The notes beneath the pieces were generated by a model. That model had not been told where the DNA came from. It was given only the letters and a program-made list of their open reading frames with translations, and did no database searches. Both the position numbers and the translations under genes were made by a program. This document shows, piece by piece, positions 30,162 to 43,900 of a stretch of 64,000 bases of DNA. How positions within the stretch are numbered: the first letter of the stretch is position 1; each line of letters begins with the position of its first letter. This DNA comes from Trichosphaerium sp. ATCC 40318 (taxonomy: Eukaryota > Protista > Tubulinea): NCBI GenBank assembly GCA_038496445.1, contig JALMLS010000455.1:186001-250000 (forward strand), read 5' to 3'.

Positions 30162-30814
30162 GTGAGTAATCTACTAAACACAAAGATCACAGCTCATTGC
30201 AAATTCACTAGACTTTTATGCTACCACTCCCCTTCATTGAGTACTTACTATCTTGTCAGGATTCGAACCAGACAACAAATAGCCATGTAAAACTTTATAA
30301 AGCAAAGTCTTCGTTTTAGCTTTGCTTTATTTTTTTGTTTGGATTCGTGTTGAAAGTTCCCAAAAAAAAAGGAAAGAAACTCCCTCAACAAAAGAGTACT
30401 ATCGTACTTGGCTCCTTATATTGTTATTCTTGGTATACGTTATTGCATATTTAACCTGTACCAACGCAGTAGAGTGGTTCTTTACTTTCACCGACAAGTT
30501 CCGTATTGAGTTGTTTTGGTCAATTAAGGGTTGACCCGGATTATCTTTTTTGTTTCATTGTGGGCATTTATAGCACGGTTGTAACAACCAAGAAATATTT
30601 AGTTCAATTGCTGGCAATCGCCATACAAAGTCTAAGGTATGAAAATGGATTTGGCTATAAGGCTATGACCAATTTTTCGATAAGCATCCGTTATCTTTTT
30701 GAAACAAGTCCGAAAACTGCTTCTTTTCTAAAAAAACTCGAGTTGAAAGGAGTGTGAAAACGCTTGTCTTTGAAACTTGGTAGTAAGTGTGTAGTCTTAG
30801 GATATCCGTGTTTA

Positions 30815-32332
30815 TTACAAGTTGCATTTAAATACAGGTTTTCTTTTTTGAAAGAAAGCCATACTTGCTTCAGTAAGATCATCTGACATGAGATGAGTAG
30901 TGTTCCACATAGCAATATGATTTAATCCGTCTTCTGTAGTATGTTCTTGTGCGTAGTTCATTACAATTTTTGTTCCTTGAACAGCCAGTGGAGAATGAGA
31001 TGCTATGACAGTGCAAATCTGCGAAAAAAAATTAGTGTTATTGGCTGAAGTTTAATGAAATTGAGAGACTATTCAACTCTCGTGATTGAAAAATATCACA
31101 AGGTAGTCAAAAAAACAAGGTCATACAACTCTTGCAATCTCCTCCGGGAATCGAACCCGGGTTGGCAACGTGACAGGCTACCGTGCTAAACCACTACACT
31201 AAGGAGGATGTGTGTATAATTAGCTAGAGCTCTACCATCGTCCGCTCGTGAAACGGCATGGATGTTACAAAGAGTGTAATGCATGCGAAGTCTTTTCTTT
31301 TGAATAAAAAACCGAAAAAAAAAGGCATCTATCTTACCTTTAATGCTCCTTTAAGCATATCTTCCTTGTTCTCATATACTTGATTAACAAATCCGCTACT
31401 TAATGCTCTACCAGATTTGAGTGGTGCTGCAGTAAACGCCATCTCGCGTGCGAGACCCTTTTAAGAAAATTGAGTTAGAGATTTTCAGTTCTTACTATTC
31501 TTATCATCAAGAAACACGTGTTTACCTTTGGTACGACTTTTTGTATGCGTTGAAGTGTACCCAAATCAGCAACCATTGCAATAGCTGTCTCCTTTATAGA
31601 GAAGTATGCATCCCTGTTTTAAAACGTTATGTTAGAATTCACTCTTTGACAACTTACAAAAAACTAAGAAACTGGTTGAACTTACTTTGTACAGACTCTA
31701 AAATCTGCTGCGCAAATGACATCAACAGCACCACCAATACATGCGCCATGAATAGCAGCAATTACTTAGAGATCACAGTTAGTAACAGGCTTAAAGACGG
31801 TACTTTTGGATGGCAATACCTGGTTTTTTACACTTTTCAATGGATGATACTGCAGCTTGCCAGTTCAATATGTGAGTGTAAAGCTGATGTTTTCTAATCC
31901 CAAATGCGCCCATGTCGCTTGTCGCTGCTGCCAAGTCCAATCCGGCACAAAATAACTTGCCGTTCGCGTGGAGAACGATGGCACGTACCTAGGAGTTTTT
32001 GTAAGTGTCAGCGCACAAGTATTCGTTGTTTTAAGCGTAGAGACGGGCGCTGATGGCGACGTGGAACGGGAAACTGTATTTTACCGACTTTTGGTTTATT
32101 TCGTACGTTGATATCGTCTGCCAACGTGTCAAAAGTACTCCTGATCTCCATAAAGAGCTATTCCGAGTTAGTTTAAATTATCACGTTTAAACAAGCGTAT
32201 TTTACCTTGTGGTCCATCAAGTTAAGCTTTTTAGGCCTGTCAAGAATCTACAAGTCGTTATGAATGTACTTGCGTTTAAAACGTTACCACTTCAGCGATA
32301 TTGTTAGAAATTTTTACGGTTAACCTCTCCAT
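30815..32332 (-). CDS. ECH1: Delta(3,5)-delta(2,4)-dienoyl-CoA isomerase-like crotonase
   Basis: LDRPKKLNLM, VRAIVLHANGKLFCAGLDL, SIEKCKKP, AIHGACIGGAVDVICAAD, SPLAVQGTKIVMNYAQEH, IAMWN. Confidence 0.8.
31137..31208 (-). tRNA. tRNA-Asp(GTC), intronic in ECH1, with an imperfect acceptor end (possible pseudogene)
   Basis: TCCTCCT TA GTGT AGTGGTTTA GCAC G GTAGC CT-GTC-AC GTTGC CAAC CCGGG TTCGATT CCCGG AGGAGAT; T7 run ~20 nt downstream. Confidence 0.8.
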
Positions 32333-37593: not shown

Positions 37594-39658
37594 TTACTTC
37601 TTCATCATTTTTGATAACATCTGAGACATACCCAGCTTATTATGAAGCATTGACCTGTTCATATTTGGTGCTGAGTGACCTTGCCTCCGTACATTCTTCA
37701 ACATTTTACCCATCATCTAGTTCTTTATTTAAAAAAACGTTCAAGCAAAGATGTATTAACTGCGTACTTTATACTGATCAAACAACTGTTGTACTTCCTG
37801 AATTGATCTTCCAGAACCTTGAGAAATACGAGGATACCTCTCTTTTTTCACAAGAGATGGTTTTGCCATTTCTAGTTCGTGTAAGTTCAAATGTTGGGGT
37901 TTTTTTCCACTGTTGGTACCTTGATCTGTTAAAGAATCCATTACAGTGAGATGCTTCAAAAAAGCTTTAGAAGAATCATCAGGAAATTTTATATTATTGA
38001 ATCCAGGTAAGTCTCTACACACTACACAAAAAAGTCAATTCCGCAAGTACAACACGTGACAAAGCAGCGTTTTTTCTCCTATGTTTTTCTTGGATTTTTC
38101 TGTTTCGAACTTACTTTGACCCATGTTACCCATATCCATCATTTGCTCTAACATAGTACGCATAGCATACATGTCCCAATCGCCAGTGACAGCGTCACTC
38201 ATTGCCTGCTGTTTTGCTTTTGGAACTTGATTGAAAATCTTGGCAGCAGATTTAACACTTTGCATACCTAATAGCCTTCTTGCAAAGATATCCGCCTTTA
38301 AGTTTTATTAGTTGAAAACCATGTGCTTTAAACGGCCCTACATCAAACAATTCTATTTCTGTGAGCTTTTCACCGTTACCAATTGCTATTATTTGTGAAT
38401 CAGTAGCTGCAACCCTACGCTACTGTTAACGATAAATGGCCCACAACTAAAGTGTATTTGTACTTACGCGCTCAAAGCTCCTCCGCCTCTTGATGTGCCG
38501 TCCATCTTGGAAATAATGATGCCATCAATATGTAATGCGCTCTAACAAAACACTAAGAAAATATAGCATCACCTGTTTATCATTGTTACCTTAAAGGCAG
38601 CTGCTTGTTCGTAAACCATTTTACCCATGTTACCTTCCATAACCATAATTACCTTATCTGGTGTCTACCCTTACGCTTAGGATGATACGGGTAGTTGTAA
38701 ATAATAACGTACTATTGAAGCATGTATTTCTTTCATTTCTTCAATCAATTCTTCTGCTTGCATGTGTCTTCCTGACGTATCAATAAGAATAACCTCAAAA
38801 CCTGCTCCCTTGGAGAACTGTTAGCACTAAAAATCAGAATCAATCATTCTTACCTTGAATAAGTCAACACCTCTCTGGCATACCACAACAGGATCACGTT
38901 CATATTCACTACAGTGAAAGCGGTTTGTAAGGTTAAGCTGTCAACGAAATAGTATACTTACATTCCAAAGAAGTCTACTTTTGCACGTGCTGCATTTTGT
39001 TGTAATTGAGCGTATGAACCAGCGCGGAATGTATCTCCACATATTACAGCAGTACGTTTTCCTTGCTGACGGTATTTGTTTGCCATCTTTGTGAGTGTTG
39101 TAGTTTTACCAGCACCTGTAATCATTAGTTAGCATTCTAAAGAAATAGCTGCGCTTTATCGAAAGCCTTTTGTGAAAGCAAAAAACAACATTCATCAACC
39201 TCAGTTTTTACAATGTAACCAGGCAAAGTGCTGCTTGTTAGGTACATTCGCACATGGAAAAAAGTAAATCGGCGCACCTTGTAACCCTACAAACATAATC
39301 ACTGTTGATCCGATTGGATTCAACCTAAACTTAGGTTCTGAAGATTCGAGCATACCCCGCACTTCTTCCAGAATAATCTACGGTAATATGTTAAGAAGGA
39401 CGGAACAAGGACTTGTGTTAGTTTCCAACTTACTTGTTCTATTATTCGTCGTCGTGAAACAGCCTTTGCCATGTTATCAAGCTTGAGACGACCTTGGAGC
39501 TTCTTTCTTAGTTTTAATGTTATATCCATAGACACATCAGCCTCTAGTAAAGCGTTGCATATATCACCGAGGAGTTTTTGTATAACATCTGAGTTAATGA
39601 TTGTTGCCATTCTCATGTTATCGAAAGCCTTGTGTAATTGTGTTTTTAAAAACTCCAT
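37594..39658 (-). CDS. SRP54: SRP54-like signal recognition particle GTPase (divergent)
   Basis: ICNALLEADV, IMFVGLQGAGKTTT, DTFRAG, DTSGRH, SKMDGTSRGGGALSA; Met-rich M domain with RISQGSG. Confidence 0.85.
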
Positions 39659-39764
39659 GGTTGTATTGTATGTTGTATTGTTAACGTTTTGTGAAAAGGA
39701 AATACGTTGAAGAGGTCAAGTCAAGGACAATCTGGTCAGAAAACTGGTAGTTTTTTACATAAGT

Positions 39765-39825
39765 GATTACGTCATTTTTTATTTCGCCGTAATCGCAACA
39801 AGTCAAGTCACGTCACGTCAAGTCT
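39765..39825. promoter_or_regulatory. Cluster of CGTCA/GTCA motifs upstream of the SRP54-like gene
   Basis: ttacgtca and aagtcaagtcacgtcacgtcaagtc lie ~110-165 bp upstream of the ATG and resemble bZIP/CRE half-sites. Confidence 0.3.
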
Positions 39826-40521
39826 TCTACAATAAACGAAATTGTGACTAATACCGGTTGGTAATCACGATAAAGCCTGGTTAGATATATACACCACGGC
39901 TTTTTTATCAGTAAAAATAAGCCAAATATCCACGAAATTTCAACGGAACTTTATGCCACTTAGGATTAGGCAAAATTTACGTATACACGAATATAATTTA
40001 GAGTACGTATACTACCTGGCGGTTGAGTGTAAACTGTGAGCATAACATGTTCGGCACATAGTACAAATTTATTCATTTGTCTTTTTTACGCTAAGCTCAT
40101 TCAACAGCATTTCTTGCCTTTTTCTCAACTTTTCTCTTGAGGACCTAAAGCTGTTCAAAGGAGAGAACAATGCTAATGGAACTAGCGAATAATTACAGTT
40201 AGAACGTTGAATCTAATGGACCGATTACACAACCTCCATTTTTACTAATGTTTACTTTTACGGCTTGGCGCTTTTCTAGCGCCCTTTACATATCTGTGAT
40301 AAAAAACTTTGGTTAGAGTCTTTTTGAATTGTTGAGCCAAGTATCAAAGAATGGAGAAGCGAATCCTATTCATAAGAACACGTGTTAAAAATATACACCT
40401 AACGAATCATAAACCACAATTTTTTTCAGAAATAGCTTCTTCGGTTTTTATATCAAATCTTGACAAGAATTGACGAGGTGCTCCAATGTCAAACTGCCAA
40501 GCAAACAGTATCCTCTTCAAT

Positions 40522-40566
40522 AACTCTCCAAAAGTTGTGGCCTCGGTTCGATTCCGGGTAAGCACT
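40522..40566 (+). tRNA. 3' half of a circularly permuted tRNA, anticodon CCA (Trp-decoding)
   Basis: AACT CT-CCA-AA AGTTG TGGC CTCGG TTCGATT CCGGG TAAGCAC T. There is no D-arm upstream, and TAAGCAC pairs perfectly with GTGCTTA at 40645. Confidence 0.8.
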
Positions 40567-40568
40567 CC

Positions 40569-40642
40569 GTCATCTGTGGTGTAACGGTCAACATATCCAT
40601 CTCTAGCATTGAAGCTTCCAGTTCGACTCTGGGCGGATGACA
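40569..40642 (+). tRNA. Complete tRNA with anticodon CTA (amber), nested in the permuted tRNA spacer
   Basis: GTCATCTG TG GTGT AACGGTCA ACAT A TCCAT CT-CTA-GC ATTGA AGCT TCCAG TTCGACT CTGGG CGGATGAC A; full cloverleaf with one C:U mismatch in the anticodon stem. Confidence 0.75.
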
Positions 40643-40644
40643 TC

Positions 40645-40672
40645 GTGCTTATGGTGTAGTGGCAGCACTCAA
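40645..40672 (+). tRNA. 5' half of the circularly permuted tRNA(CCA)
   Basis: GTGCTTA TG GTGT AGTGGCA GCAC T CAA: acceptor 5' strand plus a complete D-arm, followed by AGAGGATACT, which is complementary to 40507-40516. Confidence 0.8.
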
Positions 40673-40756
40673 GCAGAGGATACTATGAACTCAGTGCTAG
40701 ATCTCATAACTCTATAACACAGAGATTCAATTTGCTGGCTATGACTCAATCACCCC

Positions 40757-40764
40757 TTTTTTTT
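40757..40764 (+). terminator. Pol III oligo-T terminator of the tRNA locus
   Basis: T8 run; the first long T run downstream of the 5' half. Confidence 0.6.
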
Positions 40765-40961
40765 GTTCAATGCTTTAATCTAGCACGCGCCAACACTGTT
40801 TTTGTGAATGGTTAAACTAAGGGTTGGTGAATTGGTACAAATCAAATAAAGGAGGCAGCATAACAGATAGAACAGAACTCCTGTAATACCTCTTTCAGCA
40901 GCAATATGAGACAAATGCAATGGTTTCAAAAAAAAGCAGAATTTGTGAAAGTTTCATTCTT

Positions 40962-43900
40962 TTATTGTTGACGTTCATATTCCCCTTCAAATACAGTCTC
41001 TCTATCCGTTTGTATATCAATGGTAGAAACATCTGTGTATTTAGCTAATTCCATATAAGTATAGTGAATCAATTACTTGGTAGTACTACTTACTTTGATG
41101 TCTATTTGAGTAATATGGGAAAACCTTATTTCTTAATGGTGGAATTAAAAATGTCAAGAATAATATGATAATACTCAAAGCAGCAACAGATCCTACTACA
41201 ATACCTACTATAGCACCAGTAGATAAATTAGTCTGATGTGCACATATATCAGCGAAGAAGAATACTACAATGAAAGAAGGTGAGAAGAGACAGGGCAAAC
41301 AACTACTTTGAAAGAAAAAAATACAACATCGCGATTTAAATACTAGCTAGTATACTCCGTAAGGGTTGCCCTTATTTTTGCGCAATGAATAATATAGAAT
41401 TCATAAGACAGGATTTGAAAAGTGATACAATCAATTATCACGTGTCATCAGCGAGATAAATTTCAATGAACAGTACCCAACAAAAGAGAACAGAGAAGCA
41501 CTTGCCTGAGTAGTAATGAGGTGGCTGGCGTGTTGTATAGCTACTACATTTATCAACTTCATCTATAACCATAAGATTAATCTTCCCTGAGCATGTTGGA
41601 TCCTTGCTCCCGTATTTTAACATGTCCATACTACTATCAACTCCTGTGTCAAAGACTTTTGAGAAGTTGATATTAAATACAACTTCATCAAGGCAAACTG
41701 ATCCTAATCGTTTTTTCCTTTGTTAGAAACTATGTTTAACGCTAAAAAGAAAAACCTGTTATGTGTATTATCGCATCATCTGATGAGAAAGTGATGCTAT
41801 TATTGAGTATGATATCACCAGTTATGATCAAAGGCTCTGATATGACGACTTTGATATCGGGAAGAGTTCTCGTTTCGTTGACAAGACAAGTCACTTCATA
41901 TGCGCCGTCTTCATTACACATTGCTCCCTTTATAATACGAATATTAGAAATAAAAAAAGGGCATAAGCGTACAGCAATGAGTGGAGGTGGAGAATCACAT
42001 TTACAGTTGTGCCCATACTTGTTTGGATTGCCAAAACATGCTGTAAAAGAACATTACAAAGATGTACATTTTTCTGTTATTTACGTAAACATCCGACAGG
42101 TAAACCCACATTATAGTACTGTACTGTATTATTCACTGGACAGCATACTTGAGTATCAGTTAACATGCTATAAATAAAAATGGTAAGATAGACAAACTTC
42201 GGAATAGAAGTAATTATTGTGAAAATATACAAAAAAAGTCCACAAAAAATTAATCAAATCCATCAAAAAGGCCAACTTTTGTTAAACCTTGATACGCACA
42301 TGCTGATATCAGACTCCACCAAGAAATCTATCACAGTTGTTAATGTGAGAAACAAAAATAAAAGGGAGATATCTTGTCGTGAGTGATTCTATGTAAAACA
42401 ACAAGAAATAGCAATGTTGCTCACTCGCATGATTTGTTTTATCACGAAGACTTGAAATACCCAAAAGTGAGAAACGAACTTGAATTAAATTGGCTTTACT
42501 CGCCAAAAAGAAACTTATGTAGTATTTCTTCATCAAGAGCTTATAAAGTCTGAAAATGGATAGACCATTTGGCTAAACTGGCTATTTTTTGGGAAACAAA
42601 TTTTTCACAATTCTGCTTTACAATCTCTTATGTTTGTACCTGTTTGACCACCAATCATTTTGTTACCACCAAGAAATATTGTTCCCTTCGCTTCTAAGAA
42701 GTAAGGCAACATTGATTCTGTCAAAAAATCAGTGAGATTATTGTTGTTCAAGTAAATAGCTGCGTCATTCTGAAAGATCTCTAGAGGAATTTTTCCATAA
42801 AACTGATTGTGGTCCAATGACATAGAACCCCCGTATCCAAAATTAATAGAGTGCCAATCCTGTTTTGTCAAGTCACCAGTAAGATTGTTGAAGCCAATAT
42901 TACTAGTCGTTTTTTTAAGCGCTTAACCCACCAGTTGTTTTTTCATTGAAAAAAAAACCAGAAAAAAACAATAAACTTTTTTGGCTGAAAGTATTGCTAC
43001 CTCCTGAAAGATTTTGGAGACAGTAAAGATGTCATCACCACAAGCAAATCTTCATTGTTTGATCAACAAAAATAAATTGTTTTGAGAACGTACACACTTG
43101 ATACATTGAATTTGATAGATCTTGCAAAGTTATCAGGTAATTCTCCGCTAAACAGGTTTCGCCGTATTGAGCTACAGTAAACATCCGTTTAATTACATGT
43201 TCGCGATAGAATAGGTTTATACTTACTATATTGTGAGGTTTTGTAGGCCCAGAGGAGTCATAGGCAGGGGTCCTGATATCCAATTGTCATACAAAGAACT
43301 TACAAAAAAAAGGTGAGCATTTTGAATAGAGCAATTTCACGAGGTAGTATATCACGTGACGCACAATAAGGTAAGACCATCCATGTGACTAAAATCATCT
43401 GTGATACTTGTAAATTGGTTCGAATCCAAGTGACTATAGAGGTTGTAAGCTTAAACAAAAGAAAAACACTTGAGAACAAAACACGAATTACACTTACAAA
43501 AAAATAAGAACTGACGATTCAAACCGTGGTATATGTCCTGTAAAGTTATTTGCACGTAGATTGAGTATTTCCAAATTAGGTAATTTGGCTATTGGTGTAA
43601 TATTTCCACTTAAGAAGTTATTGGCTAACAACCTAATAAAAGTAAGGGGAAGGCAACTTAAACACAAACGTACAATACTGTTAAGTTATGGAGCTGACTA
43701 ATGGATTCTGGGATTTCTCCACTCAATTTATTCCCACTAAGCTCCCTAAACTCATTAGTGATATAAGGTTTATCCTACAGTACAAGTAGTCGAGGCTGCG
43801 TAAGTTGCTCAGATCAGGAAAAATGCTATCAATGCCACATTGAGACAAATCTCTTTTTTCGAAGTTAAGGAGACAAAAAATAGTCTTATCAAAAAGAGTA

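Follow-up and report, generated by a model that had tools for sequence, protein, structure and literature searches.

An abundant amoeba RNA with a permuted tRNA-like module around a second tRNA-like cloverleaf resembles a stable tRNA mimic more than the precursor of two functional tRNAs

A locus of Trichosphaerium sp. ATCC 40318 yields a discrete, abundant, unrearranged plus-strand RNA of ~257 nt (40499-40755), in which the two halves of one tRNA-like module, in permuted order, enclose a second complete tRNA-like cloverleaf. It is closer in character to a stable tRNA mimic than to a pre-tRNA with two functional products. Positions refer to the window, the whole 64-kb stretch of DNA that was analysed, and all features of the locus lie on its plus strand. 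With 36.6% GC and short introns, the window is in keeping with the GC content published for Trichosphaerium (37.7%); a protein search with a 275-aa ORF yields a single distant hit. Along the locus, a tRNA 3' half (40522-40566) is followed by a whole cloverleaf (40569-40642) and then by the matching 5' half (40645-40672), with a perfect 10-bp helix flanking all three. These parts, together with an upstream TATAT and a downstream T8 run, had been described in an earlier note on this DNA, and we confirm each of them at the same coordinates.

Nearly all canonical tRNA features are retained in both modules: an acceptor stem of 7 bp, U8, G18G19, the T loop, and an anticodon loop of 7 nt that has U33 and, in most copies, a purine at position 37. 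Rejoining the outer halves gives a 71-nt product that ARAGORN calls tRNA-Trp(CCA), which bears out the proposal that the halves form a cloverleaf. The product is identical for cuts at 27/28, 28/29, and 29/30 because of an AA ambiguity; the predicted permuted junction would link the last bases of the D-arm half with the first of the anticodon hairpin, ...GCACTCAA -> (A)CTCTCCAAAAGTTG. The anticodon-like hairpin of this outer module, which occupies the V position (40520-40538; loop CTCCAAA), is closed locally by 6 bp (40520-25 with 40533-38) and does not need the 5' half. It is followed by a T arm (40542-40558; loop TTCGATT) and by the 3' strand of an acceptor-like stem, TAAGCAC (40559-40565), which pairs with the 5' strand GTGCTTA (40645-40651) ahead of a D arm (40654-40668; GTGT / AGTGGCA / GCAC). 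T-arm-like fragments also occur elsewhere in the window, and a conventional tRNA gene, tRNA-Asp, lies at 31134-31209. The discriminator base of the outer module is U, unlike the A73 of eukaryotic tRNA-Trp.

The sequence linking the outer acceptor strands (40567-40644, 78 nt) is itself a tRNA-like cloverleaf. ARAGORN calls the inner element (40569-40642; anticodon CTA) as tRNA(CUA), and it scores 39.4 bits on the Rfam tRNA model RF00005, against a gathering score of 29. The spacers beside it are 2-3 nt long, varying with the register chosen for the inner element, and sit exactly at the places where RNase P and RNase Z would be expected to cut. The earlier view of the intervening segment as, in essence, a second tRNA with 2-3 nt spacers therefore holds. 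The A and B boxes of the inner element are in normal order. Its acceptor stem has 8 bp (or includes a G-1:C73 pair), and its anticodon stem contains a C.U mismatch.

The permuted order is real. In X5, a 2024 public run that is presumed to be an RNA run, a 295-letter contig near-identical to the window spans 40499-40755 colinearly, with Illumina adapter letters abutting both ends. A second independent public run, X1, carries a diverged paralogue in the same order, and the neighbouring exons in X1 are identical to those in the window. These RNA-derived contigs refute the reading of the permuted order as an assembly artefact, to which we attach practically no weight.

The X5 contig has a word depth of 562.8, against 3-7 for the spliced mRNAs of neighbouring genes; this makes it ~100x deeper, as a mean k-mer depth that paralogues with a common leader and trailer can inflate. 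Its adapter orientation is that of the minus-strand neighbouring gene, which, assuming a stranded library, places the RNA on the plus strand. One plus-strand transcript takes in the leader, the 3' half, the inner cloverleaf, the 5' half, and the trailer. It stops 2 nt ahead of the T8 run (40757-40764), a Pol III-type terminator, and this end fits a Pol III unit. Thus, of the single Pol III transcript proposed earlier, the spanning RNA that ends before T8 is observed, and RNA polymerase III is the probable enzyme. Upstream, a block at 40449-40498 contains TATAT (40449-53), TTGACAAGAAT (40460-70), and the 22 bases that precede the RNA 5' end; judging by its sequence, it may serve as the promoter. 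The locus has both an upstream TATA-like element and a T run, as described for algal permuted tRNA genes. No T4 run occurs inside the RNA, which is not informative because 81% of shuffles are also without one.

The predicted fold is a three-way junction. MFE and centroid structures give an identical architecture, in which the RNA ends pair as P1 (AGCAAA, 40500-40505, with TTTGCT, 40731-40736), AGTATCCTCT (40507-40516) pairs with AGAGGATACT (40675-40684) as P2, and the trailer forms an irregular hairpin, P3 (40686-40729). These three elements meet in a junction because the 44-nt P3 hairpin separates the helices on the 3' side. A pairing of 40496-505 with 40731-39 had been read as a one-bulge extension of the 10-bp helix. 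It is not a plain extension of that sort: the hairpin intervenes, and GCC at 40496-98 is outside the RNA, which begins at 40499. P2 opens onto the permuted module, with its extra hairpin, T arm, 7-bp acceptor-like stem, and D arm. In place of a loop, the second complete cloverleaf, with its own 8-bp acceptor stem, closes the acceptor-like stem. A single-stranded 3' tail (40737-40755) follows P1. The fold is not more stable than those of shuffles (z = -1.15), which is uninformative.

The P2 strands are the sole perfect 10-nt inverted repeat in the region, and a repeat of this kind turns up somewhere in ~7% of dinucleotide shuffles of 40400-40800. By itself, the repeat is poor evidence, yet it brackets the module exactly. 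An 11-bp pairing of the inner anticodon region (40602-12) with the trailer (40691-701) is present in the window copy; we dropped it because its variable positions are uncompensated in both the X5 variant and the paralogue.

The flanks of the RNA are far better conserved than its tRNA-like parts. The comparison covers three family members, two of them reconstructed from difference tables. Between the window and the paralogue, the tRNA-like modules (151 nt) have 20 differences, and the leader and trailer (106 nt together) have 3 (Fisher p=0.0035). The 5' strand of P1 and the 3' tail are identical in the paralogue, and P3 has a single change, at the unpaired position 40721. The identity extends upstream of the RNA through 40477-40498; farther upstream, the loose end of the paralogue retains TATAT and TGACAAGAAT and is otherwise divergent. 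Such conservation of the leader, trailer hairpin, and 3' tail is the opposite of what would be expected for a pre-tRNA with discarded flanks.

Substitutions within the modules preserve pairing. All 10 paralogue substitutions in stems are transitions, pairing is kept in 9 of them, and one pair is fully compensated. Among the 8 unpaired substitutions, by contrast, 5 are transversions (p=0.0065). The tRNA-like helices are therefore under selection and more than a chance occurrence. In the outer acceptor stem, the terminal G-C becomes A-U with both sides changed, and one C-G becomes U-G. A U.G in the outer T arm becomes U-A, the sole change in the outer D arm lies in its loop, and P2 has one pair changed to U-G and another to A.C.

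The anticodons are not conserved. The outer anticodon-like loop changes from CTCCAAA to CTCAAGA in the paralogue, with its stem retained through a U-G pair, so that the outer "anticodon" is CCA or, in the paralogue, CAA (on a class-I body that has no long variable arm). The inner "anticodon" is CUA in the window, CUC in the X5 variant (whose contig reads CTC-A), and a UCG-like triplet in the degenerate stem of the paralogue. There, the inner anticodon arm as a whole is degenerate, while pairing in the acceptor, T, and D stems is as good as in the window copy or better. A decoding tRNA should combine a conserved anticodon and body with freely varying flanks, and this family does not. In particular, the anticodon arm of the inner element is not conserved, its acceptor stem is not of 7 bp, and it lacks a code-compatible anticodon.

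These substitution patterns bear on the possibility that the locus is a functionless transcribed relic, that is, a rearranged tRNA-derived cluster or repeat that was duplicated and uses tRNA-type promoter elements. Several diverged copies with mutated anticodons, inner A and B boxes in normal order, and the T-arm-like fragments elsewhere in the window would all be in keeping with a relic. Structure-preserving stem substitutions, a nearly invariant leader, trailer, and upstream block, and a very abundant RNA with discrete ends would not, and we regard this origin as distinctly unlikely. A tRNA-derived SINE would have unrelated flanks between copies, an A-rich or LINE-derived tail, and an internal promoter at its 5' end. 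It is rejected, since the copies have a promoter-like block in common, including an identical upstream 22 nt, and a T run, not such a tail, terminates the unit.

Searches of the 64-kb window with 40440-40790 (blastn-short and nhmmer) return this locus alone, nor does the window contain another good match to the upstream motif. A conserved 21-mer from the leader is without a match in public metagenome contigs. An 18-mer from the start of the inner element has 58 metagenome matches, several of them in human-gut assemblies. All are unrelated and apparently protein-coding, with ~29% ungapped identity beyond the seed.

The locus shares its gene order with permuted tRNA genes but differs from them at the junction. 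Such genes are known from Cyanidioschyzon merolae, green algae, a nucleomorph, and Thermofilum pendens, and 1-74 bp of sequence links their 3' and 5' acceptor ends (PMC3978253). As in those genes, the 5' half comes after the 3' half, the acceptor strands are linked, and the leader pairs with the trailer. In contrast, the linker here is 78 nt and a complete cloverleaf, while known linkers have not been reported as tRNAs. The locus also departs from them in that its junction would fall inside the anticodon stem, its anticodon varies among copies, and its flanks outdo the tRNA parts in conservation. The contigs of four runs, which could hardly show short, modified tRNAs, include neither a junction nor a circular RNA. 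No permuted tRNA is described in the literature for amoebozoan-like protists.

We scanned all pairs of cut sites for a bulge-helix-bulge, and none combines 4/4 central pairs with a helix on either side. When the 10-bp helix is taken as the outer one, 2/4 central pairs form and the inner helix is absent; at most, 2-3/4 central pairs are reached, again with no inner helix. The bulge-helix-bulge proposed earlier at the junction is thus not found. A junction within the anticodon stem also does not fit the ruler mechanism of eukaryotic splicing. Maturation into two tRNAs through circularisation by the splicing endonuclease, as the earlier note had envisaged, is unsupported, given this missing motif, the varying anticodons, and the more conserved flanks.

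A genuine nested permuted tRNA gene, with the 257-nt RNA as the precursor of tRNA-Trp(CCA) and of an inner tRNA, is in our judgement unlikely. The leader and trailer would be taken off and the ends joined via a circle, or a two-piece complex would remain after release by RNase P and Z. The inner product would be Glu(CUC) in the X5 variant and would bear the amber anticodon CUA in the window copy. ARAGORN's acceptance of the rejoined cloverleaf, the compensatory change in the 7-bp acceptor stem, and the 2-3 nt spacers all favour such a gene, as does the single transcript with an upstream TATAT and a T run, an arrangement seen in algal permuted genes (PMC3978253). Apart from the missing bulge-helix-bulge, it is opposed by the paralogue's CAA, whose tRNA body has no long variable arm, the broken inner anticodon arm, the better conservation of leader and trailer than of the mature parts, and the discriminator U. 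The full-length form is also highly abundant, and no back-joint contig is present in four runs. This absence counts for little, since short, modified mature tRNAs escape contigs and ordinary libraries. We are slightly more doubtful of a true permuted tRNA-Trp precursor around a second tRNA that matures without a canonical bulge-helix-bulge. For example, RNase P and Z could free the inner tRNA, leaving the split halves held by the acceptor stem and P2; the two-piece split tRNA might then be trimmed and ligated.

There is a slender chance that the RNA is a precursor with the inner tRNA as its sole mature product, in which case the outer module and closing helices would be a processing or stabilising scaffold. 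The inner element lies above the Rfam tRNA threshold, the loop of the X5 variant (CUCUCAC) is typical of tRNA-Glu(CUC), and the RNase P and Z sites are well positioned. Set against this are the 8-bp acceptor stem (or G-1:C73), the C.U mismatch, the amber anticodon, and the degenerate arm of the paralogue, and the compensatory upkeep of the outer module would be left unexplained. The neighbouring genes give no sign that UAG is reassigned: the SRP54 exons in the window are free of in-frame stops, and the frame of the other neighbour terminates at TAA. An abundant working amber suppressor would thus be unexpected.

We give about an even chance that the locus belongs to a small family of abundant, stable, ~257-nt Pol III-type tRNA-mimic RNAs. 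Under the tRNA-mimic reading, the RNA would be stable, would have protein partners, and would decode through neither module. RNA polymerase III would probably transcribe it from the upstream promoter and stop at the T8 run. The two ends would then pair as P1, forming the P1/P3/P2 three-way junction, with P2 carrying the permuted module capped by the inner cloverleaf. The folded RNA could act as a tRNA mimic or scaffold, whose two tRNA-shaped elbows might recruit proteins that read the shape of a tRNA and not its anticodon. Candidate partners are RNase P or Z, the CCA-adding enzyme, modification enzymes, and a Ro-like or other tRNA-binding protein. The strictly conserved leader, P3, and 3' tail may carry a specific function.

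The order of elements in the RNA matches that of bacterial YrlA. In YrlA, a hairpin, a T arm, a closed acceptor stem, and a D arm lie within a stem formed by the RNA ends, and RNase P cleaves the YrlA of Mycobacterium smegmatis, whose acceptor stem is 7 bp long (PMC4201824). Here too, the RNA ends form a closing stem around a V hairpin, a T arm, an acceptor-like stem, and a D arm, and the nucleotides of tRNA tertiary contacts are retained. Unlike YrlA, the RNA has a eukaryotic host and about twice the length, a second, complete tRNA-like domain closes off its acceptor-like stem, and it adds a three-way junction and a 3' tail. The bacterial consensus of the Ro60-binding motif, GNCGAAN0-1G, is absent from the RNA. 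An Rfam search of 39500-41800 at E<=10 returns the tRNA family plus three weak snoRNA/sRNA matches, with neither Y_RNA nor YrlA among them. These weak matches fall upstream of the RNA, show no RNA depth, and are sub-threshold noise.

Thus, a stable mimic is favoured by the discrete, abundant, colinear RNA, its fold, the conserved flanks, the selection on paired stems, the unconserved anticodons, the absence of a bulge-helix-bulge, the YrlA-like order, the want of any sign of UAG reassignment, and the discriminator U. It is disfavoured by the canonical tRNA features of both modules and by the spacers at RNase P and Z sites; ordinary RNA-seq contigs are blind to mature tRNAs, so processing could still take place. 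Depth may be inflated, the type of the X5 run is presumed, fold stability is unremarkable, and the comparison covers only three family members. The GNCGAA motif and any Rfam match to Y_RNA or YrlA are absent.

As a mimic or as a precursor, the RNA would be new for eukaryotes outside algae. If it is a stable mimic, it would be the eukaryotic equivalent of bacterial YrlA, with the architecture doubled through a second, nested tRNA-like domain. It would also add an abundant RNA to an amoeba lineage that has hardly been studied, and the tRNA-binding machinery that it engages would become a testable question. If it is a true precursor, it would be the first gene for a permuted tRNA, and for a nested one, in Amoebozoa; its nested layout would be without precedent, and it would mature without a canonical bulge-helix-bulge.

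The gene next to the locus encodes SRP54. It lies head-to-head on the minus strand, ~840 bp away (Pfam SRP54_N, 1.2e-10; GTPase domain, 3.5e-11); a search with its first-exon ORF for independent genomic contigs found none on record. This neighbour, together with an SRP-RNA-like size and abundance, raises the possibility of an SRP-associated tRNA-like RNA, or of an SRP RNA with its Alu domain replaced by tRNA-like domains. We consider both very improbable. Gene adjacency in eukaryotes seldom reflects function. No Rfam SRP family matches at E<=10 in 39500-41800 or at gathering score across the whole window, and inspection of the trailer by eye reveals no GNAR-capped hairpin of the helix-8 type. 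A precedent comes from trypanosomatids, whose SRP includes a separate tRNA-like RNA, sRNA-76/sRNA-85, as a non-decoding component of a stable RNP (PMC2800229). Like it, the RNA described here is a tRNA-like protist RNA for which a non-decoding role is proposed, and its gene adjoins SRP54. Unlike it, this RNA is permuted and nested rather than a single molecule of 76-85 nt, and any link to SRP is conjectural.

The RNA also has a partial parallel in transcripts that carry two units. Yeasts and plants have dicistronic tRNA-tRNA or tRNA-snoRNA transcripts, in which conventional genes stand in tandem and the precursor is short-lived. The RNA resembles them in being one transcript, probably of Pol III, with two tRNA-type units a few nucleotides apart; its units, however, are interleaved rather than tandem.

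The depth, adapter-bounded ends and adapter orientation of a single contig show that the locus produces a discrete, abundant plus-strand RNA of about 257 nt. Four public sequencing runs were aligned, as Logan contigs, to positions 39000-42000. One of these (X5, from 2024, its RNA type being a guess) contains a 295-letter contig with a mean word depth of 562.8 that follows 40499-40755 colinearly, and Illumina adapter sequence abuts 40499 on the 5' side and 40755 on the 3' side. Spliced mRNAs flanking the RNA gene reach depths of 3-7 in X5. Compared with a contig of the minus-strand neighbour gene, the adapters are arranged in mirror image, as TruSeq adapters would be for a plus-strand RNA in a stranded library. 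The RNA starts 3 nt inside the outer helix of the earlier note, and its 3' end lies 2 nt short of the T8 run; this supports that note's proposal of one Pol III-type transcript over the whole locus.

The RNA contains two tRNA-like modules, one nested within the other. On the plus strand, the 3' half of the outer module (anticodon-type hairpin, T arm and TAAGCAC; 40522-40566) lies ahead of its matching 5' half (GTGCTTA and D arm; 40645-40672), and a whole cloverleaf lies between them (40569-40642), as first described. The inner cloverleaf is called as tRNA(CUA) by ARAGORN and scores 39.4 bits against the Rfam tRNA model (gathering score 29). Rejoining the outer halves at any of three equivalent cut positions gives one identical 71-nt product, which ARAGORN calls as a cloverleaf tRNA-Trp(CCA). 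The X5 contig has the same order, ruling out an assembly artefact as the source of the permutation. Its only listed differences from the window are two adjacent changes in 257 nt, at 40605-06. With these changes, CTCTAGC in the inner loop (anticodon CTA, amber, and G37; 40603-40606) becomes the tRNA-Glu-like CTCTCAC (CTC; A37); they could reflect allelic or strain variation, or a third paralogue. That the transcript serves as a precursor of the inner tRNA alone is quite improbable.

Minimum-free-energy and centroid structures agree on the predicted fold. The 10-bp helix P2 (40507-16 / 40675-84) has no mismatch, as claimed. A perfect 10-mer inverted repeat arises somewhere in 7% of shuffles of the surrounding 400-nt region; P2 is informative through its exact bracketing of the tRNA-like module. 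It opens onto a predicted five-way junction with the anticodon-type hairpin, the T arm, a 7-bp acceptor-like stem and the D arm. In place of a loop, the acceptor-like stem carries the inner cloverleaf as its cap, and this has an 8-bp acceptor stem of its own. The further outer pairing (P1, 40500-05 / 40731-36) is real, but it does not simply extend P2: a 44-nt hairpin (P3, 40686-40729) parts the two on the 3' side and thus creates a three-way junction at the base of the molecule, followed by a 19-nt 3' tail. Since the anticodon-type hairpin closes locally through 6 bp (40520-25 / 40533-38), the primary transcript needs no rejoining to form a complete structure.

The junction lacks the splicing motif expected of a permuted pre-tRNA. 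We scanned all cut-site pairs for a canonical bulge-helix-bulge (a central strand of 4 nt, a 3-nt bulge cleaved behind its second base, and flanking helices). With P2 as the outer helix, two of four central pairs form, as the earlier note had cautioned, and the inner helix is absent. A shifted register gives three of four pairs only at the expense of P2, and yields a product that is no longer a tRNA. The motif fails. No contig with the back-joint expected from a permuted junction was found in the four runs, although short, modified tRNAs could escape both contigs and ordinary libraries.

A diverged copy of the gene indicates that tRNA shape, rather than decoding identity, is conserved. In a second run (X1), the spliced neighbour contigs are identical to the window, so this run is from the same organism. 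A 656-letter X1 contig aligns to 40477-40763 (22 substitutions, 6 gap positions) and has different flanks beyond. It is a paralogue of the RNA gene, which may have been captured within a longer transcript or as DNA. The loose upstream end retains TATAT and TGACAAGAAT, and the 22 nt ahead of the RNA start are identical to the window. Comparing the window with a paralogue sequence rebuilt from difference tables shows that changes concentrate in the tRNA-like modules (20 in 151 nt) relative to the leader, P2 3' strand, P3 and tail (3 in 106 nt; Fisher p=0.0035), the opposite of what is expected for a pre-tRNA with discarded flanks. All ten stem substitutions are transitions, and base pairing survives nine of them. 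At the terminal outer acceptor pair both sides change, turning G-C into A-U, and U.G becomes U-A at three pairs. In contrast, five of eight substitutions at unpaired positions are transversions (p=0.0065, versus stems). This pattern indicates that the helices of both cloverleaves are under selection. That the locus is a transcribed relic appears improbable. In the outer loop, CUCCAAA is replaced by CUCAAGA, placing CAA within a body without a long variable arm, while the inner anticodon arm has indels and two mismatches. The three copies have CCA or CAA as their outer anticodon, and CUA, CUC or a UCG-like triplet as the inner one. The conserved parts are the acceptor, T and D arms.

The locus resembles the permuted tRNA genes of algae (PMC3978253) in its gene order, its TATA-like box and its T run. 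However, the bulge-helix-bulge and conserved decoding identity of those genes are not matched here, no junction RNA was seen among the contigs of the four runs, the flanks are conserved above the modules, and the anticodons differ between copies. We consider a genuine nested permuted pre-tRNA unlikely: the transcript and the order stand, while maturation into two tRNAs is unsupported. Our best reading, held with roughly even confidence, is that the locus belongs to a family of stable tRNA mimics of Pol III type, whose core consists of two nested tRNA-like domains. [quoted passage not shown] The predicted fold has exactly this order inside its end-formed stem, but lacks the GNCGAA motif, and Rfam gives no Y RNA-type match to the locus. 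Our literature search found no reports of permuted tRNA genes or tRNA-like Pol III RNAs for Amoebozoa, Physarum or Trichosphaerium, and the Trichosphaerium genome paper, with which the GC content, intron sizes and run years are consistent, does not mention tRNAs.

Two minus-strand genes flank the RNA gene, which stands alone in the 1.26 kb between them. Of these, one encodes SRP54 (39000-39700; exons for the N and GTPase domains, with 56- and 162-nt introns) and lies head-to-head (divergent), ~840 bp from the RNA gene; the other is membrane-protein-like. At 41264-41506, one intron of the neighbouring minus-strand gene has GC..AG ends (CT..GC on the plus strand) and is spliced in three runs. 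SRP54 beside a tRNA-like RNA is suggestive, given that trypanosomatid SRP includes one (PMC2800229), but we find no support for a link here. Because Rfam detects no SRP RNA signature at the locus or in the window, an SRP-linked RNA is very improbable.

Upstream, 40261-40339 (plus strand) gives a weak C/D-snoRNA-like match (sn2343; 22.8 bits, gathering score 60) with no RNA depth in four runs, and is probably noise. Just past the terminator and outside the RNA, TTCAATGCT and ATCTAGCAC (40766-40786) show complementarity both to the inner anticodon region (40605-13) and to the trailer (40694-702), with a TCTAGCA core common to all of these repeats. The B-box / T-loop motif GGTTCGAATCC occurs four times in the window (0.7 expected by chance), once within a tRNA-Asp gene and once within the RNA locus. 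The two further exact copies, at 30259-30269 (minus) and 43417-43427 (plus), have short flanking stems and no tRNA call, and may be tRNA fragments.
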